In this document: positions 1-58,118 of the stretch, in pieces | Layout: each line of letters begins with the position of its first letter | Position numbering within the stretch: the first letter of the stretch is position 1 | Origin: Octopus sinensis | Lineage: Eukaryota | NCBI RefSeq assembly: GCF_006345805.1 | Contig: NC_043024.1 | Span: 14,694,001 to 14,758,000, forward strand | Direction of reading: 5' to 3' | Length of the DNA stretch: 64,000 nt | Made by a program: the position numbers and the translations under genes | Notes under the pieces: model-generated | The model's input: the letters and a program-made list of their open reading frames with translations, nothing else | Told to the model about the DNA's origin: nothing | Database searches by the model: none

Positions 1-3000
1 CAACATCAATACCAACAACAACATCAATACCCACAACAACATCAATACACACAACAACATCAATACCAACAACAACATCAATACCCGTACAATCAATACC
101 CACAACATCAATACCAACAACAACATCAATACCACAACAACATCAATACCAACAACATCAATACAAACACAACAACATCAATACCACAACAACATCAATA
201 CCCACAACATCAAACCAAACAACAACATCAATACCCACATCAACATCAATACCAACAAACACACAATACCAGCATAAAACATCAATACCCACAACAACAT
301 CAATACCCACAACATCAAAACCCACAACAACATCAATACCAACAACAACATCAATACCCACAACAACATCAATACCCACAACATCAAAACCCACAACAAC
401 ATCAATACCAACAACAACATCAATACCCACAACAACATCAATACCCACAACAACATCAATACCCACAACAACATTAATACCAACAACAACATCAATACCA
501 ACTAAAACATCAATACCCCCAACAACATCAATACCAACAACAACATCAATACCCACATCAACATCAATACCAACAACAACATCAATACCAGCTAAAACAT
601 CAATACCCACAACAACATCAATACCCACAACATCAAAACACACAACAACATCAATACCAACAACAACATCAATACCCACAACAACATCAATACCCACAAC
701 AACATCAATACCCACAACAACATTAATACCAACAACAACATCAATACCAACTAAAACATCAATACCCACAACAACATCAATACCAACAACAACATCAATA
801 CCCACAACAGCATTAATACCAACAACAACATCAATACCAACTAAAACATCAATACCCCCAACAACATCAATACCAACAACAACATCAATACCCACAACAG
901 CATTAAAACCCACAACAACATCAATACCAACTAAAACATCAATACCCACAACAACATCAATACCAACAACAACGTCAATACCCACAACAACATTAATACC
1001 AACAACAACATCAATACCAACTAAAACATCAATACCCACAACAACAGCAATACCCACAACATCGAAACCCACAACATCAAAACCCACAACAACATCAATA
1101 CCCACAACAACATCAATACACGCAACAACATCAAAACCCACAACAACATCAATACCAACAACAGCATCAATACACGCAACAACATCAATACCCGCAACAA
1201 CATCAATACCCACAACAACATCAATACCAACAACAACATCAATACCAACAACAATATCAATACCCACATCAACATCAATACCAACAACAACATCAATACC
1301 CACAACAACATCAATACCCACAGAAACATCAATACCCGAAACAACATCAATACCCACAAGAACATCGATACGCACAACAACATCAATACCCGCAACAACA
1401 TCAATACCCGCAACAACATCAATACCCACAACAACATCAATACCCACAACAACATCAATACATACAACAACATCAATACCAACAACAACATCCATACCCA
1501 CAACAACATCAATACCCACAACAACATCAACGCCAACAACAACATCAACGCCCACAACAACATCAATACCCACGACGACATCAATACCAAAATCACCCTC
1601 AATACCCACAACAACATCAATACCCACCACAACATCAATACCTACAACAACATCAATACTCACAACAACATCAATACCCACAACAACATCAATACCCACA
1701 TCAATAACGACAAAGTCATCAATACCCACGACGATATCAATACCAAAAACAACATCAATACCCACAACAACATCAATAACCACAACATCAAAACCCACAA
1801 CAACATCAATACCCACAACAACATCAATACCCACAACAACATCAATACCCGCAACGACATCAATACCCGCAACAACATCAATACCCACAACAACATCGAT
1901 ACCCACAACAACATCAATACCAACAACAACATCAATACCTACATCAACATCAATACCAACAACAACATCAATACCCACAACAACCTCAATAACCACAACA
2001 ACATCAATACCCACAACAACATCAATAACCAAAACAACATCAATACCAACAACAATATCAATACCTACAACAACATCAATACCAACAACAACATCCATAC
2101 CCACAACAGCATCAATACCCACAACAACATCAATACTCACATCAACATCAATACCCACAACAACACCAACGCCCACAACAACATCAATAACCACAACGAC
2201 ATCAATACCCACGACGACATCAATACAAAAATCAACATCAATACCCACAACAACATCAATACCTACAACAACATCAGTACCCACAACAACATCAATACTC
2301 ACAAGAGCAGCAATACCCACAACAACATCAACACCCACAACAACATCGATACCCACATCAATAACCACAAAGACATCAATACCCACGACGACATCTATAC
2401 CAAAAACAACATCAATACCCACAACAACATCAATACACACAACAACATCAATACCCACAACAACATCAATACCCACAACAACATCAACACTCACAACAAC
2501 ATCAATAACCACAACAACATCAATACCCACAAAAACATCAATACTCACAACAGCATCAATACCCACAACAACATCAATACCCACCACAACATCAATACCC
2601 ACAACAACATCAATACCCACATCAATAACCACAAAGACATCAATACTCAGGAAGACATCAATACCAAAAACAACATCGATACCCACAACAACATCAATAC
2701 CCACAACAACATCAATACCCACAACAACATCAACACTCAAAACAACATCAATACCCACAACAACTTCAATACCCACAACAACATCAATACCCACAACAGC
2801 ATCAATACCCACAACAACATCAATACCCACAACGACATCAATACCCGCAACAACATCAATACCCACAACAACATCAATACCCACAACAACATCAATACCC
2901 ACAACAACATCAATACCCACAACAACATCAACACTCAAAACAACATCAATACCCACAACAACTTCAATACCCACAACAACATCAATACCCACAACAACAT

Positions 3001-6000
3001 CAATACCCACAACAACATCAATACCCACACCAACATCAACACCCACAAGAACATCAATACCAAAAACAACATCAATACCAAGTCCAAAACTGATATGCAC
3101 AACATCAATACCAACAACGACATCGATACCAACAAGGGCATCAATACCAAAACACCACTCGCTACCAACAACAAGATCAATACCCACAACAACATCAATA
3201 CCAACAACAACATCAATACTAACAACAACATCAATACCAACAACAACATCAATACACACAACAACATCAATACCCACAACAACATCAATACCAACAACTA
3301 AATCAATACCAACAACGACATCAATACCCACAACAACATCACTACCACCAACAACAATACCCAAAACAACATCAATACCCGTAACAACACCAATATGTAC
3401 AATACCAATACCAAAAACGACATCGATACCAACAACATCAATACCCACAAAAGCATCACTACCTAAAACAACCTCAATGCCCACAACAACATTAATACCA
3501 ACAAAACATCAATGCCAGCAACGACATCAATACCCACAACATCACTACCAACAACAACAGCAATGTCCACAACAACATCAATTCCCACAACAACATCAAT
3601 ACCACAACAACATTAATACCAACAACATCAATAACCATAACAACATTGATACCAACAACAACATCAATACCCACGACAACATCAATACCAACAACAACAA
3701 CATCAATACCCACAGCAACGTCAATACCAGCAGGTACATCAATACCCACAACAACATCAACACCTACAACAACATCAATAACCACAACGTCAATACCAAC
3801 GACAACATCAATACCAACAACAACACCAATACCCACAACAAATCAATACCCACAACAACATCAATACCCACAACAACATCAATACCAACAACAACATCAA
3901 TACCAACAACAACATCAATACCAACAACAACATCAATACCAACAACATCAATACTCACAACAACATCAATACCCACAACAACATCAATACCCACAACAAC
4001 ATCAATACCCACAACAACATCAATACCCACAACAACATCAATACCAACAACAACATCAATACCAACAACAACATCAATACCAACAACAACATCAATACCG
4101 ACAACATCAATACTCACAACAACATCAATACCCACAACAACATCAATACCCACGACAACATCAATACTCCCAACAACATCAATACCCACAACAACATCAA
4201 TACCCACAACATCAATACCCACAACAACATCAATACCAACAACATCATTACCCACAACAACATCAATACCCACAACAACATCAATACCAACAACAACATC
4301 AATACCAACAACAACATCAATACCAACAACAACATCAATACACACAACAACATCAATACACACAACAACATCAATACTCCCAAGAACATCAAAACCGACA
4401 ACAACTTCAATACCAACAACAACATCAATACACACAACAACATCAATGCCTACAACAACATCAATACCCACAACAACATCAATACCCACAACAACATCAA
4501 TACCAACAACATCAATTCCAACAACAACATCAATACCCACAACAACATCAATACCAACAACAACATCAATACCAACAACATCAATTCCAACAACAACATC
4601 AATACCAACAACAACGTCAATACCCACAACAACATCAATACCCACAACATCAATACCTACAACAACATCAACACCAACAACAACATCAATGCGCACAACA
4701 ACATCAATACTTACAACAACATCAAAATTGACAACAACATCAATACCCACAAGAACATCAATACCCAAAACAACGTCAAAATTGACAACAACATCAATAC
4801 CAACAAGAACATCAACACCTACAACAACATCAATACCCACAACAACATCAATACCCACAACAACATCAACACAAACAACGACATCAACACCTACAACAAC
4901 ATCAATACCAACAACGACATCAACACCTACAACAACATCAATACCCACAACAACATCAATACCCACAACAACATCAACACAAACAACATCATTACCAACA
5001 AAAACATCAATACTCACAACGAAATCAATACCCACAACAACATCAACACAAACAACAACATCAATATCCACAACGACATCAATACCCACAACAACATCAA
5101 TACCCACAACAACATCAATACCCACAACAACATCAATGCCCACAACAACATCAATACCAACAACAACATCAATACCTACAACAGCATCAATACCTACAAC
5201 AACATCAATACCAACAACAACATCAATACCAACAACAATATCAATACCCACAACAACATCAATACCAACAACAACATCAATACCCACAACAACATCAATG
5301 CCCACAACAACATCAATAACAACAACAACATCAATACCTACAACAGCATCAATACCTACAACAACATCAATACCAACAACAACATCAATACCTACAACAG
5401 CATCAATACCAACAACGGCATCAATACCAACAACAACATCAATACCGACAACAACATCAATACCCACAACAACATCAATACCCACAACAACATCAATGCC
5501 CACAACAACATCAATACCAACAACAACATCAATACCTACAACAGCATCAATACCTACAACAACATCAATACCAACAACAACATCAATACCCACAACAACA
5601 TCAATACCCACAACGACATCAATACCCACAACAACATCAATACCAACAAAAACATCAATACCAACAACGACATCAATACCAACAACAACATCAATTCCCA
5701 CAACAACATCAATACCCACAACAACATCACTACCAACAACAGCATCAATAAACACGACATCAATACCCACAACAACTTCTATAAACACAACGTCAATAAA
5801 CACGACATTAATACGAACAACGACATCAATACCAACAACAACTTCACTACCAAGAACAACATCAATACCCACAATAACATCAATACCCACAACAACATCA
5901 ATACCTACAACAACATCAATAACAACAACAACCTCAATACCGACAACAACATTAATACCAACTACAACATCAATACCAACAACAACATCAATACCAACAA

Positions 6001-9000
6001 CGACATCAATACCCACAACAACATCAATTCCCACTACAAAATCAATACACACAACAACATCAATACCAACAACAACATCAATACCCACAACAACATCAAT
6101 ACCAACAGCAATATCAATACCAACAACAACATCAATACCCACAACAACATCAATACCAACAACAACATCAATACCAACAACAACATCAATACCAACAAGA
6201 ACATCGATACCCACAACAACATCAATAACCGCAACAACAGCAATACCCACAACAACATCAATACCCACAACAAAATCAATACCAACAACAACATCAATAC
6301 CCACAACAACATCAATACCTACATCATCAATACCAACAACAACATCAATACCAACAACGAGATCAATACCAACAACATCAATACCCACAACATTAATACA
6401 CACAACGACATCAAAAACCCACAACATCAATACCTACAACAACATCAACACCAACAGCAACATCAATACCCACAACAACATCAATACCTACAACAACATC
6501 AATACCAACAACAACATCAATACCCACAACAACATCAATACCCACAACAACATCAATACCAACAACAACATCAATACCAACAACAACATCAATACCAACA
6601 ACGACATCAATTCCCACAACAACATCAATACCCACAACAACATCAATACCCACAACAACATCAACAAGAACAACATCATTACCAACAACAACATCAATAG
6701 TCACAACGACATCAATACACACAACAACATCAACACGAACAACAACATCAATATCCACAACGACATCAATACCCACAACAACATCAATACCAACAACGAC
6801 ATCAATACCAACAACAACATCAATACCAACAACAACATCAATACCCACAACAACATCAATACCCACAACAATATCAATACCCACAACAACATCAATACCA
6901 ACAACAACATCAATACCCACAACAACATCACTACCAACAATAGCATCAATAAACAGGACATCAATACCTACAACTTGTATAAACACAACGTCAATAAACA
7001 CGACATTAATACGAACAACGACATCAATGCCAACAACAACATCATTACCAAGAACAACATCAATACCCACAACAACATCAATACCTACAACAACATCAAT
7101 AACAACAACAACATCAATACCCATAACAACATTAATACCAACTACAACATCAATACCAACAACAACATCAAAACCAACAACAACATCAATACCCACAACA
7201 ACATCAATACCAACAACAACATCAATACCAACAACAACATCAATACCAACAACAACACCAATACTAACAACAACATCAATACCTACAACAACATCAATAC
7301 CAACAACAACATCAATAGCCACAAAAACATCAATACCCACAACAACATCAATAGCCACAACAACATCAATACCTACAACAAAAGCAATACCAACAACAAC
7401 ATCAATACAACAACAACATCAATAGCCCAAAAAATCAATACCACAAACAACCCATCAACATCACACCATAACCCACACAAACACAAACATCAATACCGAC
7501 AACAACATCAATACCGACAACAACGCCAATACCGACAACAACCTCAATACCCAAAAAAACATCAATACCCACAAAAACATCAATACCCACAACAACATCA
7601 ATAGCCACAACAACATCAATACACACAAAACATCAATACCCACAACAACATCAATACCAACAACAACTCAATACCGACAACAACGCCAATACCGACAACA
7701 ACTCAATACCCACAACAACATCAATACCCACACATAATAACATCAAACAAACCCACAACAACATCAATAGCCACAAACAAACATCAATACCTACAACAAC
7801 CAGCAATACCAACAACACAACATCAATACCCACAACAACATCAATACAAACACAACATCAATACCACAACAACATCAATACCCACAACAACATCAATACC
7901 TACAACAACATCAATACCCACAACAACATCAATACCAACAACAACATCAATACCCACAACAACATCAATACCCACAACAACATCAATACCCACAACAACA
8001 TCAATACCCACAACAACATCAATACCCACAACAACATCAATAGCCACAACAACACCAATACCTACAACAACAGCAATACCAACAACAACATCAATACCCA
8101 CAACAACATCAATACCCACAACGACATCAATACCAACAACAACATCAATAGCCACAACAACATCAATACCTACAACAACAGCAATACCAACAACAACATC
8201 AATACCCACAACAACATCAATACCCACAACAACATCAATACCCACAACAACATCAATACCACACACAACATCAATACCCACAACAACAACAATACCCACA
8301 ACAAAATCAATACCGACAACAACATCAATACCTACAACAACATCAAAACCCACGACAACATCAATACCCACAACAACATCAATACCGACAACTACATTAA
8401 TACCCACAACAACATCAATACCAACAACAACATCAAAACCCACAACAACATCAATACCAACGACAACATCAATACCCACAACAACATCAATACCCACAAC
8501 GTCAATACCAACAACGACATCAATACCCACAAAAACATCAATACCTACAACAACATCAATACCAACAACAACATCAATACCCACAACAACATCAACACCC
8601 ACAACAACATCAATACCAACGACAACATCAATACCCACAACAACATCAATACCCACAACATTAATACACACAACATCAATACCAACAACAACATCAATAC
8701 ACACAACAACATCAATACCAACAACAACATCAATACCGACAACAACATCAATACCAACAACAACATCAATACCCACAACAACATCAATATCCACAACAAC
8801 ATCAATACCAACAACAACATCAATACCGACAACAACATCAATACCAACAACGACATCAATACCCACAACAAAATCAATACCCACAACAACATCAATACCC
8901 ACAACAACATCATTACCAACAACAACATCAATACTCAGAACAACATCAATACCCACAACAACATCAACACGAACAACAACATCAATACCAACCACAACAT

Positions 9001-12000
9001 CAATACCCTCAACAACATCAATACCCACAAGAACATCAATACCTACATCAACATCAATACCAACAACAACATCAATACCCACAACAACATCAATGCCTAC
9101 AACAACATCATTACCAACAACAACATCAATACCCACAACAACATCAATACCCACAACAACATCAATACCAACAACAACATCAATACCCACAACAACATCA
9201 ATACCAACAACATCAATAGCAACAACATCAATACCCACAACAACATCAATACCAACAACAACAACATTACCAACAACAACATCAATACCAACAACAATAT
9301 CAATACCTACAACAACATCAATACCAACAACATCAATAGCCACAACAACAGCAATAGCCTCAACAACATCAATACCGACAACAACATCAATACCGACAAC
9401 AACGCCAATACTGACAACAACCTCAATACCCACAACAACATCAATACCCACAACAACATCAATACCCACAACAACATCAATACCAACAACAACATCAATA
9501 CCCACAATAACATCAATACCTACAACATCAATACCAAAAACAACATCAATACCAACAACAACATCAATACCCACAACAACATCAATACCTACAACAACAT
9601 CAATACCCACAACAACATCAATACCAACAACAACATCAATACCAACAACAACATCAATACCTACAACAACATCAATACCCACAACAACATCAATACCAAC
9701 AACAACATCAATACCAAAAACAACATCAATACCAACAACAACATCAATACCCACAACAACATCAATACCAACAACAACATCAATACCCACAACAACATCA
9801 ATACCAACAACAACATCAATACCAAAAACAACATCAATACCAACAACAACATCAATACCCACAACAACATCAATACCTACAACAACATCAATACCCACAA
9901 CAACATCAATACCAACAACAACATCAATACCAACAACAACGTCAACACGAACAACAACATCAATAGCCACAGCAACATCAATACCAACTACAACGTCAAT
10001 ACCTACAACAACATCAATACCCACAAGAACATCAATACCCACAACAACATCAATACAAACAACAACATCAATACCTACAACAACATCAATACCAACAACA
10101 TCAATACCCACAACAACATCAATACCAACAACATCTAAACCAACAACAACATCAATACCCACAACAACATCAATACCCACAACAACATCAATACCAACAA
10201 CAACATTAATACCCTCAACAACATCAATACCCACAAAATCAATACTTACAACAATATCAATACCAACAACAACATCAATACCCACAACAACATCAATACC
10301 GACAACAACATCAATACCCGCAACAACATCAAGACCGACAACAACATCAATACCAACAACAACATCAATACCAACAACATCAATACCTACAACAACATCA
10401 ATACCCACAACAACATCAATACCCACAACAACATCAATACCTACAACAACATCAATAGCCACAACAACATTAATACCCACGACAACATCAATACCAAAAA
10501 CAACATTAATACCAACAACAACATCAATACCAACAACAACATCAATACCCACAACAACATCAATACCAACTACAACATCAATACCTACAACAACATCAAT
10601 ACCCACAACAACATCAATACAAACGACAACATCAATACCTACAACAACATCAATACCAACAACATCAATACCCACAACAACATCAATACCTACAACATCT
10701 ATACCAACAACAATACCCACAACAACATTAATACCCACAACAACATCAATACCCACAAAATCAATACTTACAACAATATCAATACCAACAACATCAATAC
10801 CCACAACAACATCAATACCCACAACAACATCAATACCCACAACAACATCAATACCCACAACAGCATCAATACCTACAACAACATCAATACCAACAACAAC
10901 ATCAATACCCACAACAACATCAATACCCACAACAACATCAATACCCACAACAACATCAATACCCACAACAGCATCAATACCAACAACAACATCAATACCA
11001 ACAACAACATCAATACCCACAACAACATCAATACCCACAATAACATCATTACCCACAACAACATCAATACCAACATCAGCATCAATACCCACAACAACAT
11101 CAATACCCACAACAACATCAATACCCAACAACATCAATACCCACAACAACATCAATACCAACAACAACATCAATACCCACAACAACATCAATACCCACAA
11201 CAACATCAATACCAACAACAACATCAATACCCACAACAACATCAATACCCACAACAACATCAATACCAACAACAACATCAATACCCACAACAACATCAAT
11301 ACCCACAACAACATCAATACCCACAACAACATCAATACCCACAACAACATCAATACCCACAACAACATCAATACCCACAACAACATCAATACCCACAACA
11401 ACATCAATACCCACAACAGCATCAATACCAACAACAACATCAATACCAACAACAACATCAATACCAACAACAACATCAATACCAACAACAACATCAATAC
11501 CCACAACAACATCAATACCCACAACAACATCAATACCCACAACAACATCAATACCAACAACAACATCAATACCCACAACAGCATCAATACCAACAACAAC
11601 ATCAATACCAACAACAACATCAATACCCACACACAACATCAATACCCACACAACATCAATACCGACAACAACATCAATACCACAACAACATCAATACCCA
11701 CAACCACATCATACCAATACCAACACAACATCAATACCCACAACAGCATCAATACCAACAACAACATCAATACCAACAACAACATCAATACCCACAACAA
11801 CATCAATACCCACAACAACATCAATACCCACAACAACATCAATACCAACAACACATCAATACCAACCACATCAATACCCACAACAACAACATCAATACCC
11901 ACCCACAATAACCATTAACCTACCCACAACAACATCAATACCAACATCAGCATCAATACCCACAACAACATCAATACCCACAACAACATCAATACCCACA

Positions 12001-15000
12001 ACAACATCAATACCCACAACAACATCAATACCAACAACAACATCAATACCAACAACGACATCAATACCAACAACAACATCAATACCAACAACAACATTAA
12101 TGCCTACAACAACATCAATACCAACAACAACATCAATACCCACAACAACATCAATACCAACAACAACATTAATGCCTACAACAACATCAATACCAACAAC
12201 AACATCAATACCAACAACAACATCAATACCCACAACAACATTAATGCCTACAACAACATCAATACCAACAACAACATCAATACCAACAACAACATTAATG
12301 CCTACAACAACATCAATACCAACAACAACATTAATGCCTACAACAACATCAATACCAACAACAACATCAATACCAACAACAACATCAATACCAACAACAA
12401 CATTAATGCCTACAACAACATCAATACCAACAACAACATTAATGCCTACAACAACATCAATACCAACAACAACATCAATACCAACAACAACATCAATACC
12501 AACAACAACATTAATGCCTACAACAACATCAATACCAACAACAACATCAATACCCACAACAACATTAATGCCTACAACAACATCAATACCAACAACAGCA
12601 TCAATACCCACAACAACATCAAAACCTACAACAGCATCAATACCTACAACAACATCAATACCAACAACAACATCAATACCAACAACAACCTCAATACCCA
12701 CAACAACATCAATACCCACAGCAACAACAATACCCACAACAGCAACATTACCCACAACATCAATACCCACAAAATCGTCAATAACCACTACAACATCAAT
12801 ACCCACAACAACATTAATACCATCAACAACATCATTACCCACAACAACATTAATCCCAACAACAACATCAATACCAACAACAACATCAATACCCACAACA
12901 ACAAAAATACACACAACAACATCAATACTCACAACAACATCATTTCCCACAACAACATCAATACCCACAACAACAGCAATACCCACAACAACAGCAATAC
13001 CTAGAACAACATCAATACCCACAACAACAGCAATACCCACAACAACATCAATACCCACAACAACATCAATACCAACAACAACATCAAAACCAACAACAAC
13101 ATCAATACCAACAACAACATCAATAGCCACAACAAGATCAATACCCACAACAACAGCAATACACACAACAACATCAATATCCACAACAACAGCAATACCC
13201 ACAACAGCATCAATACCCACAAGAACAGCAATACCCACAACAGCATCAATACCCACAAGAACAGCAATACCCACAACATCAACAATACCCACAACATCAT
13301 CAATACCCACAACAACAGCAATACCAAGAACAACATCAATACCCACAACATCAATACCCACAACAACATCAATACCCACATCATCATCAATACCCACAAC
13401 AACAGCAATACCCACAACAACATCAATAGCCACAACAACAGCAATACCCACAACAACATCAATACCCACAACAACATCAATACCCACAACAACATCAATG
13501 CCCACAACAACAGCAATGCCCACTACAACATCAATACCCACAACAACATCAATACCCACAACAACAGCAATACCCACAACAACATCAATACCCACAACGA
13601 CATCAATACCCACAACAACATCTATACCCACAACAACATCAATACCCATAACAACATCAATACCTACAACAACATCAATACCCACAACAACATCATTACC
13701 CACAACAACATCAATACACACAACAACAGCAATACCCACAACAACATCAATACCAACAACAACATCAATACCCACAACAACATCAATACCAACAACAACA
13801 TCAATACCCGCGACAACATCAATACCCACAATAACATCATTAGTAACAACAACATCATTACCAACAACAGCATCAATACCCACAACAACATCAATACCAA
13901 CAACAACATCATTACCAACAACAACATCAATAGCCACAACAACATCAATACCCACAACTACATATATACCAACAACGACATCAATACTAACAACAACATC
14001 AATACTAACAACAACATCAATATCTACAACATCAATACCCACAACTACATCAATACCAACAACATCAATACCCACAACAACATCAATACCAACAACAACA
14101 TCAATGCAAGCATCAACATCAATACCCACAACATCAATACCAACAACAACTTCTATAAACACAACGTCAATAAACACAACATTAATACCAATAACAACAT
14201 CAATACCCACATCGACAGCAATACCCACAACAACATCAATACCAACAACTACATCAATAGCCACAACTACATCAATAGCCACAACAACATCAATACCCAC
14301 AACAACAGCAATACCCACAACAACATCAATACCCGCAACAACAGCAATGCCCACTACCACATCAACAATACCCACAATAACATCAATACCCACAACAACA
14401 TCAACACCCACAACAACAGCAATACCCACAACAACATCAATACCCACAACAACAGCAATACCCACAACAACATCAACAATACCCACAACTACATCAATTT
14501 CCACAACAACATCAATACCCACAACATCATCAATACCCACAACAACAGCAATACCCACAACAACATCAATAGCCATAACAACAGCAATATCCACAACAAC
14601 ATCAATACCCACAACAACATCAATACCCACAACAACAGCAATACCCACTACAACATCAATACCCACAACAACAGCGATGCCCACTACAACATCAATACCC
14701 ACAACAACATCAATACCCACAACAACATTACCTACAACAACATCAATACCCACAACAACATCAATACCCACATCAACATCAATACACACAACAACAGCAA
14801 TACCCACATCAACATCAATAGCCACAACAACATCAATACCCACAACAACAGCAATACCCACAACAACAGCAATACCCACAACAACAGCAATACCCACAAC
14901 AACATCAATACCCACAACAACATCAATACCCACAACAACAGCAATACCCACAACAACAGCAATACCCACAACAACATCAATACCCACAACAACATCAATA

Positions 15001-17670
15001 CCCACAACAACAGCAATGCCCACAGCAACAGCAATACCCACAACAACATCAATACCCACAACAACATCAATACCCACACCAACAGCAATACCCACAACAA
15101 CAGCAATACCCACAACTACTTCAATACCCACAACAACAGCAATACCCACAACAACAGCAATACCCACAACAACAGCAATGCCCACAACAACAGCAATACC
15201 CACAACAACATCAATACCACAACAACACCAATACCCCACAACAACATCAATACCCACAACAACAGCAATGCCCACAACAACAGCAATACCCACACAACAA
15301 CATCAATACTCACAACAACATCAATACCCACAACAACACAATACCCACAACAACTTCAATACCCACAACAACATCAATACCCACAACAACAGCAATACCC
15401 ACAACAACAGCAATGCCCACACACAACAGCAATACCCACAACAACTCAATACCCACAACAACATCAATACCCACAACAACATCAATACCCACAACAACAA
15501 CAATGCCCACAACAACAGCAATACCCACAACAACAGCAATACCCACAACAACATCAATACCCACAACAACAGCAATGCCCACAACAACATCAATAGCCAC
15601 AACTACATCAATAGCCACAACAACATCAATACCCACAACAACTGCAATACCCACAACAACATCAATACCCGCAACAACAGCAATGCCCACTACAACATCA
15701 ACAATACCCACAATAACATCAATACCCACATCAACATCAATACACACAACAACAGCAATACCCACAACAACATCAATAGCCACAACAACATCAATACCCT
15801 CAACAACATCAACAATACCCACAACAACATCAATACCCACAACAACATCAATACCCACAACATCATCAATACCCACAACAACAGCAATACCCACAACAAC
15901 ATCAATAGCCATAACAACAGCAATACCCACAACAACATCAATACCCACAACAACATCAATACCCACAACAACATCAATACCCACAACAACAGCGATGCCC
16001 ACTACAACATCAATACCCACAACAACATCAATACCCACAACAACATCATTACCCACATCAACATCAATACACACAACAACAGCAATACCCACAACAACAT
16101 CAATAGCCACAACAACATCAATACCCACAACAACAGCAATACCCACAACAACAGCAATACCCACAACAACATCAATACCCACAACAACATCAATACCCAC
16201 AACGACATCAATACCCACAACAACATCAATACCCACAACAGCAATACCCACAACAACATCAATACCCACAACAACATCAATACCCACAACAACATCAATA
16301 CCCACAACAACATCAATACCAACAACAACATCAATAGCCACAACAACAGCAATACCAACAACAACATCAATACCCACAACAACAGCAATGCCCACAACAA
16401 CAGCAATACCCACAACAACATCAATACCCACAACAACATCAATACCAACAACAACATCAATGCCCACAACAACAGCAATACCCACAACAACAGCAATACC
16501 CACAACAACATCAATACCCAGAACAACAGCAATGCCCACAACAACAGCAATACCCACAACAACAGCAATACCCACACAACATCAATACCCACAACAACAG
16601 CAATACCTACAACAACATCAATACCCACAACAACAGCAATGCCACAACAACAGCAATACCCACAACAACTTCAATACCCACAACAACATCAATACCCAGA
16701 ACAACATCAATAGCCATAACAACATCAATACCCACAACAACAGCAATACCACAACAACATCAATACCCACAACAACAGCAATGCCCACAACAACAGCAAT
16801 ACCCACAACAACTTCAATACCCACAACAACATCAATACCCACAACGACATCAATAGCCACAACAACATCAATAGCCACAACAACAGCAATACCAACAACA
16901 ACATCAATACCCACAACAACAGCAATGCCCACAACAACAGCAATACCCACAACAACATCAATACCCACAACAACATCAATACCAACAACAACATCAATGC
17001 CCACAACAACAGCAATACCCACAACAACAGCAATACCCACAACAACATCAATACCCACAACAACAGCAATACCCACAACAACAGCAATACCCACAACAAC
17101 AGCAATACCCACAACAACATCAATACCCACAACAACAGCAATACCTACAACAACATCAATACCCACAACAACAGCAATGCCCACAACAACAGCAATACCC
17201 ACAACAACTTCAATACCCACAACAACATCAATACCCAGAACAACATCAATAGCCATAACAACATCAATACCCACAACAACAGCAATACCCACAACAACAT
17301 CAATACCCACAACAACAGCAATGCCCACAACAACAGCAATACCCACAACAACTTCAATACCCACAACAACATCAATACCCACAACGACATCAATAGCCAT
17401 AACAACATCAATACCCACAACAACATCAATACCCACAACAACATCAATACCCACAACAACAGCAATGCCCACAACAACAGCAATACCCACAACAACTTCA
17501 ATACCCACAACAACATCAATACCCACAACGACATCAATACTCATAACAACATCAATACCCACAACAACAGCAATACCCACAACAACATCAATACCCACAA
17601 CAACATCAATACCCACAACAACAGCAATACCCACAACGACATCAATACCCATAACAACACCAATACCAAC
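1..17670 (+). repeat. Coding minisatellite, 18-bp unit ATACCCACAACAACATCA (15-bp variants), about 980 copies
   Basis: Directly visible; very strong A/C strand bias. Confidence 0.98.
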
Positions 17671-18490
17671 AACATCATCAATACCCTCAGCATCCTCATC
17701 AGTATCCTCAGCAGCATCATCACTACCAACATCATTATCAACAACAACATCAGCACGAACAACAACTTCATCAATACCCTCAGCATCCTCATCAGTATCA
17801 TCAGCAACATCAGCATCTTCACTACCATCAGTATCTTCAAAAGTTCGTCTCCCATCTACACCAGCAAAAAAAATGCCAACATCTCCAAATCCGTCAACTC
17901 TGATTCCAAGCGTAGTGACATCACAGACATCTTTTCCAACATCTGCATCCGTAACAACCCCAACAACTTCATCCTTCTCAAGAACATCATCTCCCACATT
18001 ATCAACAGTGAGTGAAAAAGCAGCTGCAGTTCCAACGATTAGCGTAACTACACGAAATCCAACATCTCTCCCAACAGAAACCACGACATTGGTACGAACC
18101 TCAAATGCATCAATGTTTTCAACCCCACTAACATCTGTTTCGGCGAGATCAGCAATTCCAATAATGTCGACATTAACATCTCTAACCAGCTCAATACCAG
18201 CATCCACCTCAGTACCCTCAGGAACAATACCTTCAATTCCTACAACAATACCATTCATAACAACTGCAGCTTCATCTTCATGCCAACAACAACAACAACA
18301 ACAACGGTACTACCAAAAACAAAATTATACAGAACAACAACAAGTATACCCACAACAGCAACAGAAATAACTACACCAGCATCTTCAATATTAACAAAAA
18401 CAGTTCCATCACTGACATCAACAACAATGCCATTATCAATTCCAAGAACTGCTCCTTCTCTACCAACCACTCATTTACCAACTACATCAG
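1..18490 (+). CDS. Giant mucin-type PTS exon, 5' end outside the window (about 6,100 aa of (IPTTTS)n plus a unique S/T/P-rich tail); assembled with many 1-nt frameshifts
   Basis: The repeat frame IPTTTS continues into non-repetitive S/T/P sequence from about 17670 (SSIPSASSSVSSAASSLPT...). Variation sits mostly at third positions of this frame (CCC/CCA/CCT/CCG, ACA/ACG/ACT). One missing A near 18280 (TCA ATG) joins ORF 15413 to ORF 18280. Candidate donor ACATCAG|gtaccg at 18490 is phase 1, matching all downstream exons. Confidence 0.75.
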
Positions 18491-38093: not shown

Positions 38094-38150
38094 ACTAAGT
38101 TTTAACATTCTAGCCCACTTCCAGTTTACAGTAGTGCTTGGAAGGAATGT

Positions 38151-40697: not shown

Positions 40698-41030
40698 ATA
40701 TATATATATATGCATATATATATACACACACATGCACATATATTGATGTATATGTAAGACAAGAAGTATAAGGAAAAAGGTTTATATTTCACTTTTGCCC
40801 TTGTTCATAAACATAAGAGAAAATCTGAGGAAAGTTCAAGAAGATATTTAAAAAGGAAACAGTTTGTCATGTTAATACTGCTTTGAAATTACCACATATG
40901 AGAATAGTTATGGATGTCATGCAGAAGAGTACAGAAGGGGAGATAAGCTTAGAGTGTGTCTGTGTGTCTGTATACAATGATTTGTCTTGAACATAATATA
41001 TATCACAATTTCTATATTCTGAAATTACAG

Positions 41031-41072
41031 CTTCATCTACAGTACCTTCATACTCTGGATCTATACAGACAG
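41031..41072 (+). CDS. Microexon B5, 42 nt (ASSTVPSYSGSIQT)
   Basis: tctgaaattacag|CT...CAGACAG|gttagt. Confidence 0.8.
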
Positions 41073-41499
41073 GTTAGTGAATAAAAACTTGTTTACTTAG
41101 TAAATATCAACACACATAAAGACATACACACATACACACACACATATACACACATGGATATATATAAATATATTATTTTGTGAATCTTTTATCAATATAC
41201 TATAAAGTATATTAATTATTTTTTTAAGTCAATACCATGTTCTACTATTTTAAAAAAGCTCTTTACATTATTTTTTCCACTAAATAATGTAAAGTACATG
41301 GCTAACACAGTAGAGCTTGGATTTAACTTATAAAAACATGTACATAATATTTAATAGTATTCTATGGGTGCAGAAACACAGACAGAAATGTATATGTGCT
41401 ATGCAGAAACATATGTCGCAAGGCATTATAGTACAATATAAAAATTTCCATCCACAAATCATTATCTTCATTGATATGTATATATTTCTTTATATATTT

Positions 41500-41847
41500 T
41501 TATGTGCCGGTGGCACGTAAAAAGCACCATCCGATTGTGGCCGTTTGCCAGCCTTGTCTGGCCCCCGTGCCGATGGTACGTAAAATCTCCATCCGATCGT
41601 GGCTGTTTGCCAGCCTCGCCTGGCCCCCGTGCCGGTGGCACGTAAAAAACACCATCCGATCGTGGCCGTTTGCCAGCCTCGTCTGGCACCTGTGCCGATG
41701 GCACGTAAAAAGCACCCACTACACTCATGGAGTGGTTGGTGTTAGGAAGGGCATCCAGCCATAGAAACATTGCCAGATCAGACTGGGCCTGGTGCAGCAT
41801 CCTGGCATGGAAAGCGGACGCTAAACAATGATGATGATGATGATGAT
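41500..41847 (+). mobile_element. RTE-type LINE 3' end (tandem repeats, (ATG)n tail)
   Basis: Same family as 37170-37930. Confidence 0.75.
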
Positions 41848-42689: not shown

Positions 42690-42731
42690 CATCATCTACT
42701 GCAGTCCCATACTCCTCATCTATTCAGACAG
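42690..42731 (+). CDS. Microexon B6, 42 nt (ASSTAVPYSSSIQT)
   Basis: ttttatattctaaaatttcag|CA...CAGACAG|gttagt. Confidence 0.8.
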
Positions 42732-44592: not shown

Positions 44593-45041
44593 TCAGGTTA
44601 TTAAGAAGGAAATATCCGATTTTCTAGACAACCAACATTGGTTGATAGAGACAGGCCAGTTCTCTTGCAAGACAATGCTCAACCACATGTTGCACAAAAA
44701 ACACTACTCAAGTTAGAAGAACTGAACTTGGAAGTACTCCGTCGTCTACCATATTCTCCAGACCTGCACCAACTGACTATCATGTTTTCCAGGCATTAGA
44801 CAACTTTTTGCAAGGAAAAAACTTCAAATCTGAAGAATATGCAAAAAACAGCCTTTCGTGATTCCATCACCTCTTGCTCTCCAGAATTCTTCGCTGTTGA
44901 CATAAATAAGCTTCTGATAAAATGGCAAAATTGTGTTGATAATTTAGGCACATACTTTGATTAACTGCATTGCTTTTTGCTGAGATAACTTTAAAATAAA
45001 CTTTCAGTTCAAAATTGGACATTTCATTCTTAATGACCTGA
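44593..45041 (+). mobile_element. Internally deleted mariner transposon (second family)
   Basis: Imperfect TIRs tcaggttattaagaaggaaatatccgatttt / aaaattggacatttcattcttaatgacctga with TA TSDs; LLQDNAQPHVA...LPYSPDL. Confidence 0.88.
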
Positions 45042-45134: not shown

Positions 45135-45545
45135 GTTTAACATCCGTTTTCTGCGCTAGCACGGGTTGGGCGGTTTAACCGGGGTCTGGGAAGTCAGGGG
45201 CTGCACCAGGCTCCGGCCTGATCTGGCAGTGTTTTTACAGCTGGATGCCCTTCCTAACGCCAACCACTCCGCGAGTGTAGTGGGTGCTTTTTACGTGCCA
45301 CCGGCACAGGTGCCAGGGGAGTCTGGCATCGGCCACGATCGATTGGTGCTTTTAACGTGCTACTGGCACAGAAGCCAGCCAGGATGGCGCTGGCATCGGC
45401 CACGTTCAGATGGTGCTTTTTATGTGCCACCAGCACAGAAGCCAGTCGAGGCGGTGCTGGCAACGGTCACGTTCGGATGGTGCTTTTTATGTGTCACCGG
45501 CACAGGTATCACAACTACTATTTCCATTGATATTTATTTCGATGT
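45102..45545 (-). mobile_element. RTE-type LINE 3' end
   Basis: (cat)n tail followed by the reverse complement of the 3' UTR seen at 37170-37930. Confidence 0.75.
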
Positions 45546-45734: not shown

Positions 45735-45794
45735 CTTCAACACAGCTTCCTCCCTCCATTGTAACTTCACAACCAGTTACACCTCAGACAACAG
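45735..45794 (+). CDS. Microexon A2, 60 nt (ASTQLPPSIVTSQPVTPQTT)
   Basis: ttttactctttccacctctatag|CT...ACAACAG|gtaagt; phase 1-1. Confidence 0.85.
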
Positions 45795-46079
45795 GTAAGT
45801 TCTTAACCATATGAATCATTTCTTCAAATATGTTGTTTACATACAGAACTTGTATAGGTTCCATTTAAAACCTAAACAGATTATTCTTGCCCATTTCTCA
45901 GCTTTTAAGACTATACTTAAAGAAATTATTAGTTGTCATTTTGGTTTTCTGTGATAGTTCAGATCTTTTCAATGGTATTTTATTTGCATACATACTTACA
46001 TACATACAGAGCCTTGATGTAAAATAACTTTGTGTTTATAACAATTTGAGGAAACAAATGCAACTGACAGCCATAATAA

Positions 46080-46460
46080 TAGGAGCACTCCGTCGGTTGC
46101 GACGATGAGGGTCCCAGCTGATACGATCAGCGGAACAGCTTGCTCGTGATATTAACGTGCAAGTGGCTGAGCACTCCACAGACACGTGTACTCTTAACGT
46201 AGTTCTCAAGGAGATTCAGCATGACACAGAGTGTGACAAGGCTGGCCTTCTGAAATACAGGTACAAGAGAAACAGGAAGAAAGAGCAAGAGAAAGTTGTG
46301 GTGAAAGAGTACAACAGGGTTCACCACCACCCCCTGCCAGAGCCTCGTGGAGCTTTAGGTGTTTTCGCTCAATAAACACTCACAATGCCCGGTCTGGGAA
46401 TCGAAACCGCGATCCTCCGACCGCGAGTCCGCTGCCCTAACCACTGGGCCATTGCACCTC
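46080..46460 (-). mobile_element. SINE family B, full length
   Basis: 12-bp TSD cagccataataa. Confidence 0.9.
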
Positions 46461-46865
46461 CAGCCATAATAAAACTGTGAGTCTGACTAAGTTGATTTTT
46501 GTTCAGCCTCTGGGCAATCAGAATAACATGTCCTCTTTGTTGAATTATTTTATTTATCTACTGCAGTGCTTTTCAAACTTTTTGCTGGAGCGGAACCCCA
46601 AGGAAACATTCCACTGGCTCGAGGAACTCCTGTGCAATAATTTAATAGTCTTATGCACACATATCTACACAGGAGAATTAAAAATTACTGCCGATATTAG
46701 AAGTTTTGTAACTTCTTGCGGAACCCCTGGACTGTGCTGGCGGAACCCTGGTTGAGAACCACTGATCTACTGATATACAAAATGTGACACTTAATTATGA
46801 GGCTGCATTGAAACTCAAAATAACTGGATTATGTTTAATTTGCAAAGCTTAGATTCCAAGGACGT

Positions 46866-47440: not shown

Positions 47441-47850
47441 GGCGCAGGAGTGGCTGTGTGGTAAGTAGCTTGCTAACCAACCACATGGCTCTGGGTTCAG
47501 TCCCACTGCATGGCATCTTGGGCAAGTGTCTTCTGCTATAGCCCCGGGCCGACCAATGCCTTGTGAGTGGATTTGGTAGACGGAAACTGAAAGAAGACTG
47601 TCGTATATATGTATGTATATATATGTGTGTGTGTGTGTTTGTGTGTCTGTGTTTGTCCCCCTAGCATTGCTTGACAACCGATGCTGGTGTGTTTACGTCC
47701 CCGTTACTTAGCGGTTCGGCAAAAGAGACCGATAGAATAAGTACTGGGCTTACAAAGAATAAGTCCCGGGGTTGATTTGCTCGACTAAAGGCGGTGCTCC
47801 AGCATGGCCGCAGTCAGATGACTGAAACAAGTAAAAGAGTAAAGAGTAAA
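47441..47850 (+). mobile_element. SINE family A
   Basis: ggcgcaggagtggctgtgtggtaag head, full length. Confidence 0.9.
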
Positions 47851-47995
47851 GAGATGGAAATTGCAGAAAACCTGTTTGTGTGTGTGTGTGATCATGATGA
47901 TGGTCATCATCATTGCTATTTCACGTGCATTTTTCATGCTAGTATGTCCAGGATGGTGTGTGTGTGCATGGAGATACACTTGTATTTTTTTATAT

Positions 47996-48411
47996 CTTGG
48001 CTGTGTGGTAAGTAGCTTGCTTACCAACCACACGGTTCTAGGTTCAGTCCCACTGCGTGACACCTTAGGCAAGTGTCTTCTATTATAGCCTCAGACCGAC
48101 CAAAGTCTTGTGAGTGAATTTGGTAGACGGAAACTGAAAGAAGCCCTTCGTATATATGTATATATGTGTATATATAAATATATATATGTATGTGTGTGTG
48201 TATATATTTGTGTGTCTGTCCCCACAACATCATTTGACAACTGATGTTGGTGTGTTTACGTCCCCGTAACTTAGCAGTTTGGCAAAAGAGACCGATAGAA
48301 TAAGTACTAGGCTTACAAAGAATAAGTCCTGGGGTTGATTTGCTCGACTAAAAAGAGGTGGTGCTCCAGCATGGCTGCAGTCAAATAACTGAAATAAGTA
48401 AAAGAGTAAAA
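47996..48411 (+). mobile_element. SINE family A
   Basis: Full body and tail. Confidence 0.88.
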
Positions 48412-48965: not shown

Positions 48966-49022
48966 CTTCAGTACATCCGTCCTCCATTCCATCTTCACAA
49001 CTAGTTACACCTCATACAACAG
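48966..49022 (+). CDS. Microexon A3, 57 nt (ASVHPSSIPSSQLVTPHTT)
   Basis: ttttactctttccacattaacag|CT...ACAACAG|gtaaag; phase 1-1. Confidence 0.8.
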
Positions 49023-50127: not shown

Positions 50128-50184
50128 TTTCAGTATATCCTTCCATCATTGTAACTTCACAACTAATTACACCTCATACAACAG
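50128..50184 (+). CDS. Microexon A4, 57 nt (VSVYPSIIVTSQLITPHTT)
   Basis: ttttactcattcgacattaacag|TT...ACAACAG|gtaaag; phase 1-1. Confidence 0.78.
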
Positions 50185-50550: not shown

Positions 50551-50578
50551 ATAAAGGTGATATATATTAATTATTACA

Positions 50579-50743
50579 GGCGCAGGTGTGGCTGTGTGGT
50601 AAGTATCTTGTTTACCAACCATATGGTTCCAGGTTCAGTCCCACTGCGTGGCACCTTGGGCAAGTGTCTTCTACTATAGCCTCGGGCTGACCAAAGCCTT
50701 GTGAGTGGATTTGGTAGACAGAAACTGAAAGAAGCCTGTCGTA

Positions 50744-50796
<53 letters not shown>

Positions 50797-51020
50797 ATGT
50801 GTTTGTGTGTCGGTGTTTGTCCCCCTAGCATTGCTTGACAACCGATGCTGGTGTGTCTACGTCCCCGTCACTTAGCGGTTCAACAAAAGAGACCGATGGA
50901 ATAAGTACTGGGCTTACTAAGAATAAGTCCCGGGGTCGATTTGCTTGATTAAAGGCGGTGCTCCAGCATGACAACAGTCAAATGACTGAAACAAGTAAAA
51001 AGAGTAAAAAGAGAAAAAGA
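50579..51020 (+). mobile_element. SINE family A
   Basis: Full length. Confidence 0.88.
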
Positions 51021-51082
51021 GTATATGTGGAAGTGTTGAAGAAGATGAAAGAGAAGAGACAGTTGATGGATACTAACAGAGA

Positions 51083-51465
51083 GGAGGCGCGATGGCCCAG
51101 TGGTTAGGGCAGCGGACTCGCGGTCGTAGGATCGCGGTTTCGATTCCCAGACCGGGCATTGTGAGTGTTTATTGAGCGAAAACACCTAAAGCTCCACGAG
51201 GCTCCGGCAGGGGATGGTGGTGATCCCTGCTGTACTCTTTCACCACTACTTTCTCTCACTCTTACTTCCTGTTTCTGTTGTGCCTGTATTTCAAGGGGCC
51301 AGCCTTGTCACTCTCTGTGTCACACTGAATATCCCTGAGAACTATGTCAAGGGTACATGTGTCTGTGGAGTGCTCAGCCACTTACACGTTAATTTCACAA
51401 GCAGGCTGTTCCGTTGGTCGGATCAACCGGAACACTCATCGTCGTAACCGACAGAGTGCTTCCAC
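51083..51465 (+). mobile_element. SINE family B, full length
   Basis: 11-bp TSD actaacagaga. Confidence 0.9.
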
Positions 51466-52530: not shown

Positions 52531-52557
52531 AAGAGAGAGATATATAGAGAGATATAT

Positions 52558-52953
52558 AGGCGCAGGAGTGGCTGTGTGGTAAGTAGCTTGCTAACCAGCC
52601 ACATGGTTCCGGGTTCAGTCCCACTGTGTGGCACCTTGGGCAAGTGTCTTCTGCTATAGCCCCGGGCCGACCAATGCCTTGTGAGTGGATTTGGTAGACG
52701 GAAACTGAAAGAAGCCTGTCGTATATATGTATATATATATATATATATATGTGTGTCTGTGTTTGTCCCCCTAGCATTGCTTGACAACCGATGCTGGTGT
52801 GTTTACGTCCCCGTCACTTAGCGGTTCGGCAAAAGAGACTGATAGAATAAGTACTAGGCTTACAAAGAATAAGTCCCGGGGTCGATTTGCTTGACTAAAG
52901 GCGGTGCTCCAGCATGGCTGCAGTCAAATGACTGAAACAAGTAAAAGAGTAAA
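52558..52953 (+). mobile_element. SINE family A
   Basis: Full length. Confidence 0.9.
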
Positions 52954-52989
52954 ATAATATATTATTTCTTTCTTTTTTTTTCTTTGCAG

Positions 52990-53258
52990 AAAAACCATGT
53001 GAAATGGTAAATCTTATGAGTGCTCCTGACCTTCTTCCTGATTCATACATTACCGTTACAAGCAACCAAGAGAATGCATCTGAAATAAGACATTTACGTC
53101 AAGGTTGGGTTTCAGATAAAAGGGATTATTTCCCTACAGTTCACATTTTCCTCCCAAGTCAGTATTTGATATTCGGTGCTCGTTTAAGCCTGTCAATTAA
53201 AAAAAATATAAGAACATTTGATTTATTTTTTGAAAGTGTAAAAGACAAACCTTCACAG
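52990..53258 (+). CDS. Exon encoding the N-terminal part of a divergent discoidin/F5-8 type C-like domain
   Basis: Long T tract ttctttgcag|AA AAA CCA TGT...CCT TCA CAG|gttagt; phase 1 to 0; KPCEMVNLM...LPDSYITVTS...LRQGWVSDKRDYFPTVHIFL...IRTFDLFF. Confidence 0.82.
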
Positions 53259-55284: not shown

Positions 55285-55420
55285 ACATTTACAGCAGATA
55301 GTGTTGTAGATATTCCAGCGAAGATGCCTGATGAAACAATAATGATATCTTTCACTAAAAACTTACCCTTTCGACCCATTAGAGTAACTATTAGTATTCT
55401 TACTTGTTTACGGAATGCAT
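55285..55420 (+). CDS. Exon completing the discoidin-like domain (TFTADSVVDIP...VTISILTCLRNA)
   Basis: Branch cctaac, then ttctctctttccag|ACA...GCAT|gtaagt; phase 0 to 1, complementary to the 52990 exon; supplies the closing Cys. Confidence 0.82.
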
Positions 55421-56693: not shown

Positions 56694-57077
56694 TGGTAAA
56701 TTATTTGCTTTATTCGTTAAATTACAACAAAAGCAGCCTTGCATTCAAAGTAGTAGCCATCGTGTTGCACCGTCTGAAGTCAGTTCTTTGATCCTACACT
56801 GATACCACTTCTTGTCCTTTGGGGCAAAATTTTCAATAAACTGAAATAGTAAAATAAAAATTATTCATTCGTGTTAAAACATTACAAAATGTTTTTCCTT
56901 TGACTAACATGTTCACATTCTTTTCTCAAGATTTGCATTTAATTAGTACAGCTTTTATCTGTTTTATGCTTTTTTTTATTTCATTTGTTTTACAAATTAA
57001 TTAACAGACACACACGCTTTTTCTCACACACACATGCATATGCCCCTCTACATGCACACACACATACACACTTACAT

Positions 57078-57463
57078 TGTGGAGGCGCAATGGCCCAGTG
57101 GTTAGGGCAGCGGACTCGCGGTCATAGGATCGCGGTTTCGATTCCCAGACCGGGCGTTGTGAGTGTCTATTGAGCGCAAACACCTAAAGCTCCACGAGGC
57201 TCCGGCAGGGGATGGTGGTGATCCTTGCTGTACTCTTTCACCACAACTTTCTCTCACTCTTACTTCCTGTTTCTGTTGTACCTGTATTTCAAAGGACCGG
57301 TCTTGTCACTCTCTGTGTCACGCTGAATATCCCCGAGAACTACGTTAAGGGTGCACGTGTCTGTGGAGTGCTCAGCCACTTACACGTTAATTTCACGAGC
57401 AGGCTGTTCCGTTGATTCGGATCAACCGGAACCCTCGTCGTCGTAACCGACGGAGTGCTTCCA
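57078..57463 (+). mobile_element. SINE family B, full length
   Basis: 12-bp TSD acacacttacat. Confidence 0.92.
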
Positions 57464-57970: not shown

Positions 57971-58011
<41 letters not shown>

Positions 58012-58101
58012 GGGAAAAGAGAGTAAATGTGAATGAGAGAGTAAATCAGGGTTGTATTTTTTTGTTGTTTTGTTTTTCTTTTGTACTCACTGTTGTTATA
58101 G

Positions 58102-58118
58102 AAACAAAGCTGTATTGA
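58102..58118 (+). CDS. Possible terminal coding exon (ETKLY*)
   Basis: Very long U-rich tract, ctcac branch-like motif, gttatag|AA ACA AAG CTG TAT TGA in phase 1; aataaa at about 58491. Confidence 0.3.

Follow-up and report, generated by a model that had tools for sequence, protein, structure and literature searches.

In vertebrate mucins such as MUC2, MUC5B, MUC4 and MUC16 the Pro/Thr/Ser-rich (PTS) domain is encoded by one very large exon, and an N-terminus of three VWD-C8 units is typical of the gel-forming mucins. Elastin, the PEVK region of titin and the fibrillar collagens are built from one short exon per repeat module, with a uniform exon phase (1-1 in elastin) and cassette-type alternative splicing. 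F5/8 type C (discoidin) domains are beta-sandwiches of about 130-150 residues, with a terminal disulfide between cysteines close to either end. To our knowledge, gel-forming and lophotrochozoan mucins have not been described with long arrays of 42-nt microexons. Lang et al. 2016 (PMC4948705) describe the F5_F8 domain as a hallmark of the mucin-like proteins of lophotrochozoans. The polymorphic mucins of Schistosoma mansoni (SmPoMuc) carry 0-20 tandem copies of a 27-bp exon and are alternatively spliced (review PMC4015677), and the schistosome micro-exon genes (MEGs), to the extent that this review relays DeMarco et al. 2010, combine very short symmetric exons with longer flanking exons, exon skipping and secreted products. 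Here we analysed a 64,000-nt stretch of the Octopus sinensis genome (C28:14694001-14758000, + strand; hereafter the window), which probably carries the 3' part of a single, very large gene for a secreted, mucin-like protein, encoded on the + strand. Genome-wide searches covered the 2.72 Gb assembly of 13,516 sequences, and literature searches returned no description of this gene.

Read 5' to 3', the proposed gene would contain at least 28 upstream microexons of 42 nt, one of them 11.5 kb before a giant exon, followed by the giant exon itself, a single unit of ~34.8 kb whose ~11,600 residues of TSIPTT-type repeat would form a scaffold for dense O-glycosylation. Nine intact microexons, each predicted to encode a 14- to 20-residue module rich in Ser, Thr and Pro (S/T/P), would come next, and a two-exon domain (D1/D2) bracketed by two cysteines would come last. 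In such a protein a heavily O-glycosylated, extended polymer would result from the PTS exon together with the microexon modules, and the terminal domain would bind sugar or a surface. The symmetry of the microexons would allow linker length to change in evolution through duplication of units, a process visible at the locus, and exon skipping might alter linker length within the cell too. A preliminary description of this DNA had proposed a giant mucin exon, a microexon cassette and a discoidin-like domain. The anatomy reported here reads as larger than that, with the cassette as one end of a much larger microexon array and with VWD and C8 exons further upstream.

The locus resembles the gel-forming and lophotrochozoan mucins (VWD-C8-TIL, PTS, F5_F8_type_C) and the vertebrate mucins with a giant PTS exon in having a huge P/T/S tandem-repeat region in a single exon, VWD and C8 exons 5' on the same strand and a small, possibly discoidin-like domain after the PTS region, and it comes from a taxon in which mucin-like proteins with F5_F8 are on record. 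It differs from them in that VWD/C8 lie 317-398 kb from the window, to which they would be linked, and in that the domain falls below the Pfam threshold for F5_F8_type_C. The likeness to SmPoMuc lies in a mucin-like protein in which every short repeat module has a microexon to itself, duplicated in tandem and neutral to the frame. The two are unrelated in sequence. The octopus modules, of 42-60 nt, stand beside a conventional PTS exon of 35 kb and total at least 40 over the locus, and the alternative splicing documented in SmPoMuc is hypothetical at the octopus locus. As in the MEGs, there are runs of very short symmetric exons, arranged in tandem and with lengths that are multiples of three (3n). 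The MEG products covered by the review are small proteins built mostly from microexons, whereas the octopus microexons would serve as linkers in a giant protein; the MEG microexons described there are unrelated to each other, whereas those of the octopus are recent paralogues of one another. With elastin, titin PEVK and collagen the locus has in common a short exon for each low-complexity module and a single exon phase, but these proteins are elastic or structural rather than O-glycosylated mucins and show no homology to it.

The proposed exons of the window, with the run at which the reading frame of the giant exon changes, are as follows (in splice junctions a slash marks the exon-intron boundary).

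1-17686, + strand: 3' half of an 18-bp tandem array (Tandem Repeats Finder, ~993 copies, 86% match)
17687-18490, + strand: S/T-rich unique tail of the giant exon, in frame 2 to ~18283 and then in frame 1 to the donor
18284-18305, + strand: (CAA)7 run adjoining the frame switch
30402-30461, + strand: microexon B1, 60 nt, phase 1-1, encoding A-PIQPSSSIVTTQPVTPHIT, bounded by aatag/ and /gtaaag
32134-32175, + strand: microexon A1, 42 nt, phase 1-1, encoding ASTTATPYPGSTQQ
33714-33754, + strand: microexon A2, 41 nt, one base short, terminal G of the ...CAG/GT junction lost
36690-36731, + strand: microexon A3, 42 nt, phase 1-1, encoding ASSTVPPYSGSIQT
39734-39775, + strand: microexon A4, 42 nt, phase 1-1
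41031-41072, + strand: microexon A5, 42 nt, phase 1-1, acceptor ttacag
42690-42731, + strand: microexon A6, 42 nt, phase 1-1
45735-45794, + strand: microexon B2, 60 nt, phase 1-1
48966-49022, + strand: microexon B3, 57 nt, phase 1-1, lacking 3 nt, in frame, that B1 and B2 have
50128-50184, + strand: microexon B4, 57 nt, phase 1-1
52990-53258, + strand: domain exon D1, 269 nt, phase 1-0, starting E-K-P-C, with the motifs LLPD..I.V.SN...R...GW and the donor GTTAGT
55285-55420, + strand: domain exon D2, 136 nt, phase 0-1, ending ...RVTISILTCLRNA at /gtaagtat

The 18-bp unit of the array reads I-P-T-T-T-S (TSIPTT) in one frame and Q-H-Q-Y-P-Q and N-I-N-T-H-N in the other two. The array extends 16.2 kb 5' beyond the window, to a total of ~33.9 kb, and the giant exon would begin at an acceptor, ttacag/, at window coordinate -16329 (C28:14677671), which gives it 34,820 nt as assembled. 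The first 230 nt past this acceptor are unique, S/T-rich and open in the phase-1 frame only. IPTTTS is encoded by 469 of the 731 exact 18-mers, the variants being mainly S>A or I>M, and the region has the long Pro/Thr/Ser-rich tandem repeats of a mucin, that is, of a PTS-domain glycoprotein. It is specific to this locus and strand: a 36-nt query of two units, searched with up to two mismatches, matched the genome 537 times on the forward strand and never on the reverse, with all of the matches listed inside the array. Given that the consensus has no stop in any of its three forward frames, long open reading frames (ORFs) in the array prove little. Coding is nevertheless favoured by two properties of the repeat, namely that variation peaks (41%) at the third, four-fold degenerate position of its Pro codon when read as TSIPTT, and that the spacing between units in the window array is a multiple of 3 in 764 of 798 cases, the other 34 being off by 1-2 nt. 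The preliminary reading of this segment as a mucin-like PTS exon thus stands, and the exon is even larger than first supposed, starting 16.3 kb upstream of the window; an intact ORF is not what the sequence shows as assembled, since the frame changes ~30 times within the window.

The off-frame units are mainly 17-mers, many of them short of one base from a CCC or AA run. We consider the frame breaks to be most likely residual single-base consensus errors of a long-read assembly, because they are mainly 1-nt deletions, many in CCC/AA runs, and clustered; consensus errors in the giant exon would also explain the absence of the gene from gene models. The frame-breaking 17-/19-mers fall at 129-266, 3495-3829, 6381-7861, 11121-11895, 15214-15432 and 16568-16746. 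These clusters are ~3.5-4 kb apart, for which read-end or polishing artefacts, haplotype switches and real structure are possible causes. A higher-order repeat of ~3.8 kb behind this spacing was considered and rejected, as the array shows no such lag, the best long lags being 126 and 2484 nt.

Outside its first 150 nt, which have low-complexity matches elsewhere, the tail that follows the array occurs only here in the genome. Segment 17690-17840, of CAGCAxCAxCA-type low complexity, is matched at 70-79% identity by ~100 dispersed tandem-repeat loci on both strands. The S/T/P reading of the tail switches from frame 2 to frame 1 at ~18259-18283, just 5' of the (CAA)7 run, which is likely the result of a 1-nt indel, either an assembly error or a true frameshift. 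Beyond the run, a frame-1 S/T/P reading with a TTSIPTT motif extends exactly to the donor CAG/GTACCG at 18490/18491. The statement that the giant exon ends in phase 1 accordingly holds in frame 1 but not in frame 2; it depends on a 1-nt correction near 18259-18283, because the preceding 1.5 kb are read in frame 2.

Microexons were sought as AG...GT segments with no stop in phase 1 and an S/T/P content of 55% or more, and their families were completed by alignment. The scan gave 12 candidate loci of 3n length on the + strand, compared with a single one on the - strand and with 0-5 after shuffling of the sequence. Scan and alignments bore out the ten paralogous microexons of 41-60 nt proposed previously: all are bounded by AG and GT, and nine are of 42, 57 or 60 nt and in phase 1-1, the tenth (33714-33754) being a base short. 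This tenth copy is probably a decayed pseudo-exon, which leaves nine intact microexons in the cassette, five of 42 nt and four of 57-60 nt. The 42-nt module of family A encodes A-S-S-T-V-P-P-Y-S-G-S-I-Q-T, and family B has four copies in the genome, all of them within the window. Since all internal exons are in phase 1-1, any subset of the microexons could be included with the frame kept. All exons end in G and the exon that follows starts with CA, CT, TT or AA, so that every pattern of skipping would yield a sense codon at the junction (GCA, GCT, GTT or GAA).

Two further single candidate exons had been claimed besides the ten paralogues; these could not be identified, and the remaining AG/GT-bounded S/T/P-rich segments are without paralogue support. 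Six such segments (19757-19828, 23322-23382, 29364-29407, 34203-34237, 37560-37598 and 60830-60975) were rejected as exons for lack of a paralogue with conserved boundaries, and several of them, 29364-29407 for instance, overlap copies of short interspersed elements (SINEs), other repeats or ORFs resembling those of transposable elements (TEs). A minus-strand ORF overlapping the A units (e.g. 36526-36732) was likewise rejected as a real exon, as stops interrupt its upstream copies.

The cassette is interrupted by the only run of N in the window.

39387-39486, no strand: assembly gap of 100 N, intronic, inside a tandemly duplicated intron-plus-exon unit

On its left the gap is flanked by a truncated SINE-like insert, itself preceded by an (AT)n/(TG)n tract; on its right the conserved repeat unit resumes 248 nt 5' of microexon 39734-39775, and this unit is collinear with those at 36.2-36.9 kb and 40.6-41.3 kb. 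Segments 39488-40199 and 40790-41496 are 97% identical and form a tandem duplication that encloses the gap, so the number of A-type (42-nt) exons may be under-counted. A check of the window found no candidate exon and no reading frame crossing the gap, across which continuity is not provable.

Microexons of this kind occur well beyond the window. The A unit is found on the C28 + strand only, in two clusters, one in the window and one at 14.389-14.438 Mb. Two further families of 42-nt, phase-1 microexons lie on the same strand: family C (P-S-S-P-T-P-Y-L-G-x-S-P-T) at 14445388-14461152, with an outlying copy at 14666138-14666179 that is 96% identical and stands 11.5 kb 5' of the giant-exon acceptor, and family D (S-T-V-S-M-P-Y-S-E-S-T-V-T), with at least 10 copies at 14467852-14484759. 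All 42-nt families (A, C and D) have Pro-Tyr at module positions 7-8 and a terminal ...ACAG/GT in common. A search of the 2.72 Gb with the pattern TTYCAG-N17-CCNTAY-N19-GTNNGT returned 43 matches, of which 32 fall on the C28 + strand within 348 kb (14388848-14736737); the remaining 11 are scattered and equal the chance control obtained with the reversed pattern (3+8). Upstream of the window there are thus at least 28 further 42-nt phase-1 microexons, at C28:14388848-14484759 and 14666138. Because the A unit is confined to the C28 + strand and the B unit to the window, the microexons are not pieces of a transposon. We propose that the cassette grew through tandem duplication of exon-plus-intron units.

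Conservation among these copies is uneven. In the 23 A copies AG and GT are kept throughout (23/23), and the exon measures 42 nt in 21 copies, 33 nt in one and 41 nt in one. Between the two clusters, A units are 86% identical over the 40 nt 5' of the acceptor, 77% over the exon and 83% over the donor, falling to 36-56% further out. Working splice units with a low-complexity coding part under loose constraint would produce such a profile, which is unlike the even decay that a neutral repeat would give. Consistent with the maintenance of frame, the length variants seen in copies with intact splice sites are all in frame, amounting to 9 nt in family A, 3 nt in B and 6 nt in C. The 40-nt intronic stretch 5' of the A acceptors (ATATATATTACAATTTCTATATYCTRAAATTTCAG, e.g. 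36650-36689) is more conserved than the exon itself (86% vs 77%), and may be a splicing-regulatory element.

The two-exon globular domain with phases 1-0 and 0-1 was upheld by its good splice sites and by paralogues with matching phases. Paralogues of D1 are found only on contig C9, at 75.10-75.23 Mb, with 29-35% identity. The C9 modules have the acceptor and donor phases of D1/D2 and share the GTAAGTAT donor with the window copy. There the two-exon module is tandemly repeated about every 3 kb, as a multi-domain paralogue of the single module of the window, and a 48-nt T-rich phase-1 microexon ending ACAG/GTA lies just 5' of each D1-like exon. Since this exon structure is kept at ~30% identity, D1 and D2 are taken as genuine coding exons, and a T-rich phase-1 microexon followed by the domain is the design of a family. 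A Cys at D1 residue 4 is present in every copy that covers the position, and another, 5 residues before the end of D2, is invariant across the window and C9 copies.

The occurrence of F5/8 type C domains in invertebrate mucin-like proteins, on which the label "discoidin-like" had drawn, agrees with Lang et al. 2016 (PMC4948705). For the domain itself the label has marginal matches to neuropilin b1/b2 (E ~1e-3) in its favour and the lack of a Pfam match against it. A profile of six D1 sequences, compared with 177,635 PDB sequences, matched only neuropilin-1 b1/b2, both of them discoidin domains (E 1.3e-3 to 1.8e-2), and, at E 1.7, a single CBM32, the alignment spanning the motif I..SS....GW....(I/V)D(L); the D2 profile had no meaningful match in the PDB. 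In a Pfam search with six relatives, one of the six matched PF00754, short of significance (E=0.22). An AlphaFold model of D1 alone consisted mostly of strands, at a pLDDT of 47.6, and was unusable for a fold search. The discoidin-like label is plausible but unproven, and D1/D2 probably form a beta-rich domain of ~135 residues that is a very divergent sugar- or surface-binding module of the discoidin/CBM32 type.

Exons matching the VWD and C8 models in the genome-wide search lie further upstream on C28.

C28:14296409 (weak), 14352970 (E 4e-22) and 14356175, + strand: VWD
C28:14320081, 14336144 (E 3e-12) and 14360777, + strand: C8

They run in the order VWD, C8, C8, VWD, VWD, C8 and stand 17-82 kb 5' of the first microexon (14378487). 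VWD/C8 exons, apparently making up three units per locus, occur both at C28:14296409-14360887 (+) and at C9:75046616-75079657 (+), the C9 series being ~20 kb 5' of the D1/D2-like modules, and their presence at both loci suggests a family of gel-forming-type mucin genes. No further VWD was found by this search downstream of the window domain. On grounds of position, strand and analogy with the C9 locus, the gene of the window probably starts 350-400 kb upstream with three VWD-C8 units. These coordinates suggest that it spans ~14.30 to at least 14.75 Mb, or 450 kb or more. A bolder proposal is that the locus is a gel-forming-type mucin unit of ~450 kb in which the glycosylated region, formed by the ~35 kb repeat exon and at least 40 flanking phase-1 microexons of 42-60 nt, is assembled by including those microexons in regulated, tissue-specific combinations; we regard this as doubtful.

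A number of observations weigh against a single mucin gene that is intact and expressed. In the giant exon the S/T/P frame shifts ~30 times in the window part and ~15 times more upstream (about 45-50 in total), the length of 34820 nt is 2 mod 3, and stops occur in every frame, with those of frame 3 at 7602, 11916, 13002 and 15594; as assembled, the PTS region does not read as intact coding sequence, although it may fail to do so merely through assembly errors. In the microexons, the diversity of A exons (0.19) is about equal to that of the near flanks and the third-codon-position bias is weak (0.135, 0.198, 0.233), so that peptide-level selection on the modules is not demonstrated. For D1 and D2 each taken alone Pfam returned no family even at E<=10, and the genome-wide search with PF00754 (F5_F8_type_C) gave no match on C28 or at the C9 locus. 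A HMMER scan of 1.84 billion representative proteins found as relatives of D1 two fragments at 32-36% identity and none higher; no predicted protein of this library thus contains the domain, as would be expected of an unannotated gene and equally of one that is not expressed. That the VWD/C8 exons are linked to the window is something we infer, because 181 kb between them (C28:14.485-14.666 Mb) entered the analysis as coordinates of search matches rather than as sequence that was read. Scans of the 13.7 kb upstream and of 18.5-30.4 kb found no signal-peptide exon, and an exon scan of 55.4-84 kb, 3' of D2, found nothing recognisable, no search there having been aimed at cystine-knot or VWC domains. 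Finally, two features lie close to the donor of the giant exon.

18368-18370, + strand: TAA stop in frame 2, closing an ORF of 1182 codons 120 nt 5' of the donor
18654-18659, + strand: AATAAA, 285 nt past the frame-2 stop

Together with the donor GTACCG, which is weak and has no G at +5, these mean that the giant exon could be a terminal exon. There would then be at least two adjacent genes, the giant exon being the last exon of an upstream mucin gene that uses this stop and this poly(A) signal, and the cassette with D1/D2 belonging to a transcript of its own or to an alternative 3' end. In favour of this, the frame read across the last 1.5 kb does end at this stop. However, the frame-1 S/T/P reading with TTSIPTT reaches the donor exactly, as a 1-nt indel would produce, and AATAAA is fairly frequent by chance in AT-rich sequence. 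Furthermore, the phase and terminal G of the giant exon fit the cassette, microexon families flank the exon on both sides, and 18.5-30.4 kb contains no plausible first exon with an ATG and signal peptide from which a second gene could start. We therefore hold the division into two genes to be unlikely.

The broken frames lend themselves to another explanation, in which the locus is a decaying pseudogene, or the array a non-coding minisatellite derived from an exon, so that the frameshifts are real and the exons relics. The 34 units of non-3n length in 17.7 kb, the stops in each frame, the visibly broken microexon at 33714-33754 and the position of D1 without a close match among protein sequences would all follow from this, and a repeat consensus open in all three forward frames deprives the long ORFs of value as evidence for coding. 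Clustered 1-nt deletions, many of them in CCC/AA runs, nevertheless resemble consensus error more than random decay, and most unit spacings are still multiples of 3. Splice sites and frame are kept in 22 of the 23 A copies and in all B, C and D copies, identity between copies is highest at the splice signals, and D1 and D2 are intact with their cysteines and motifs conserved, all of which makes decay quite improbable. It is less probable still that the ten microexons are not exons, but the conserved piece of a locally amplified repeat that acquired AG and GT by chance. The similarity does reach beyond each microexon to its flanks, over a duplicated unit of 0.3-0.7 kb, and openness of the exon says little where all three + frames are open. 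A repeat of this sort is hard to reconcile with copies that are not dispersed and lie on one strand of one 348-kb interval, with old copies whose similarity collapses beyond -40..+8 while staying at 77-86% over acceptor, exon and donor, with in-frame length variants in otherwise intact copies, or with the 48-nt T-rich exon ahead of the C9 domain exon, which is not homologous to the window microexons and yet has the same phase and the same ...ACAG/GTA end; we consider this explanation highly unlikely. A single large secreted mucin-like gene, to which the window contributes the 3' part, thus remains the reading that we favour with moderate confidence.

Several repeats surround the proposed exons. 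The introns are crowded with SINE-like copies that belong to two abundant families of ~400 bp, of a kind known from octopus genomes; one copy ends ~35 nt before the D1 acceptor.

31448-31853, 33191-33595, 47441-47853, 47998-48411, 50575-51017, 52557-52954 and 61904-62340, both orientations: SINE-like copies
29369-29754, 46078-46462, 51072-51464 and 57070-57463: further set of SINE-like copies

Beginning 84 nt past B1, segment 30545-31274 consists of a 249-bp unit, headed by a tRNA-like sequence, that is repeated three times in tandem at 96% identity; ARAGORN reported no tRNA there, and Rfam and tRNA scans were empty. The cassette introns also contain three occurrences of a GC-rich 63-67-bp minisatellite, at 37414-37762, 41504-41716 and, inverted, at 45283-45505. 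By eye, the broken ORFs at 19317-20483, 23206-23803 and 34038-35090 (- strand) resemble remnants of reverse transcriptase/endonuclease, and those at 26958-27203, 38135-38646 and 44605-44964 (+ strand) remnants of a mariner-type transposase; Pfam gave no significant match for the TE-like ORF pieces that were tested. 3' of the gene parts, 61363-61683 and 63576-63896 form a 321-bp direct duplication of 98% identity, and a 28-bp minisatellite of ~30 copies lies ~3.4-4.3 kb past the end of the window (window-equivalent 67421-68268).

If expressed, the gene would rank among the largest mucin genes described so far and its giant exon among the largest coding exons, and the gene appears to escape standard annotation. 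Its expression would also provide a molluscan case of mucin linkers made from symmetric microexons in arrays, a design so far seen mainly in the schistosome SmPoMuc and MEG genes, in elastin and in titin. Were the microexons included in varying combinations, the product would be a splicing-tunable mucin in which the length and chemistry of a mucus polymer could be adjusted, by a mechanism not described in molluscs. More broadly, the locus flags a class of genes that single-base errors in the repeats of long-read assemblies would break, and that may for this reason be missed in catalogues of the cephalopod mucus proteome.

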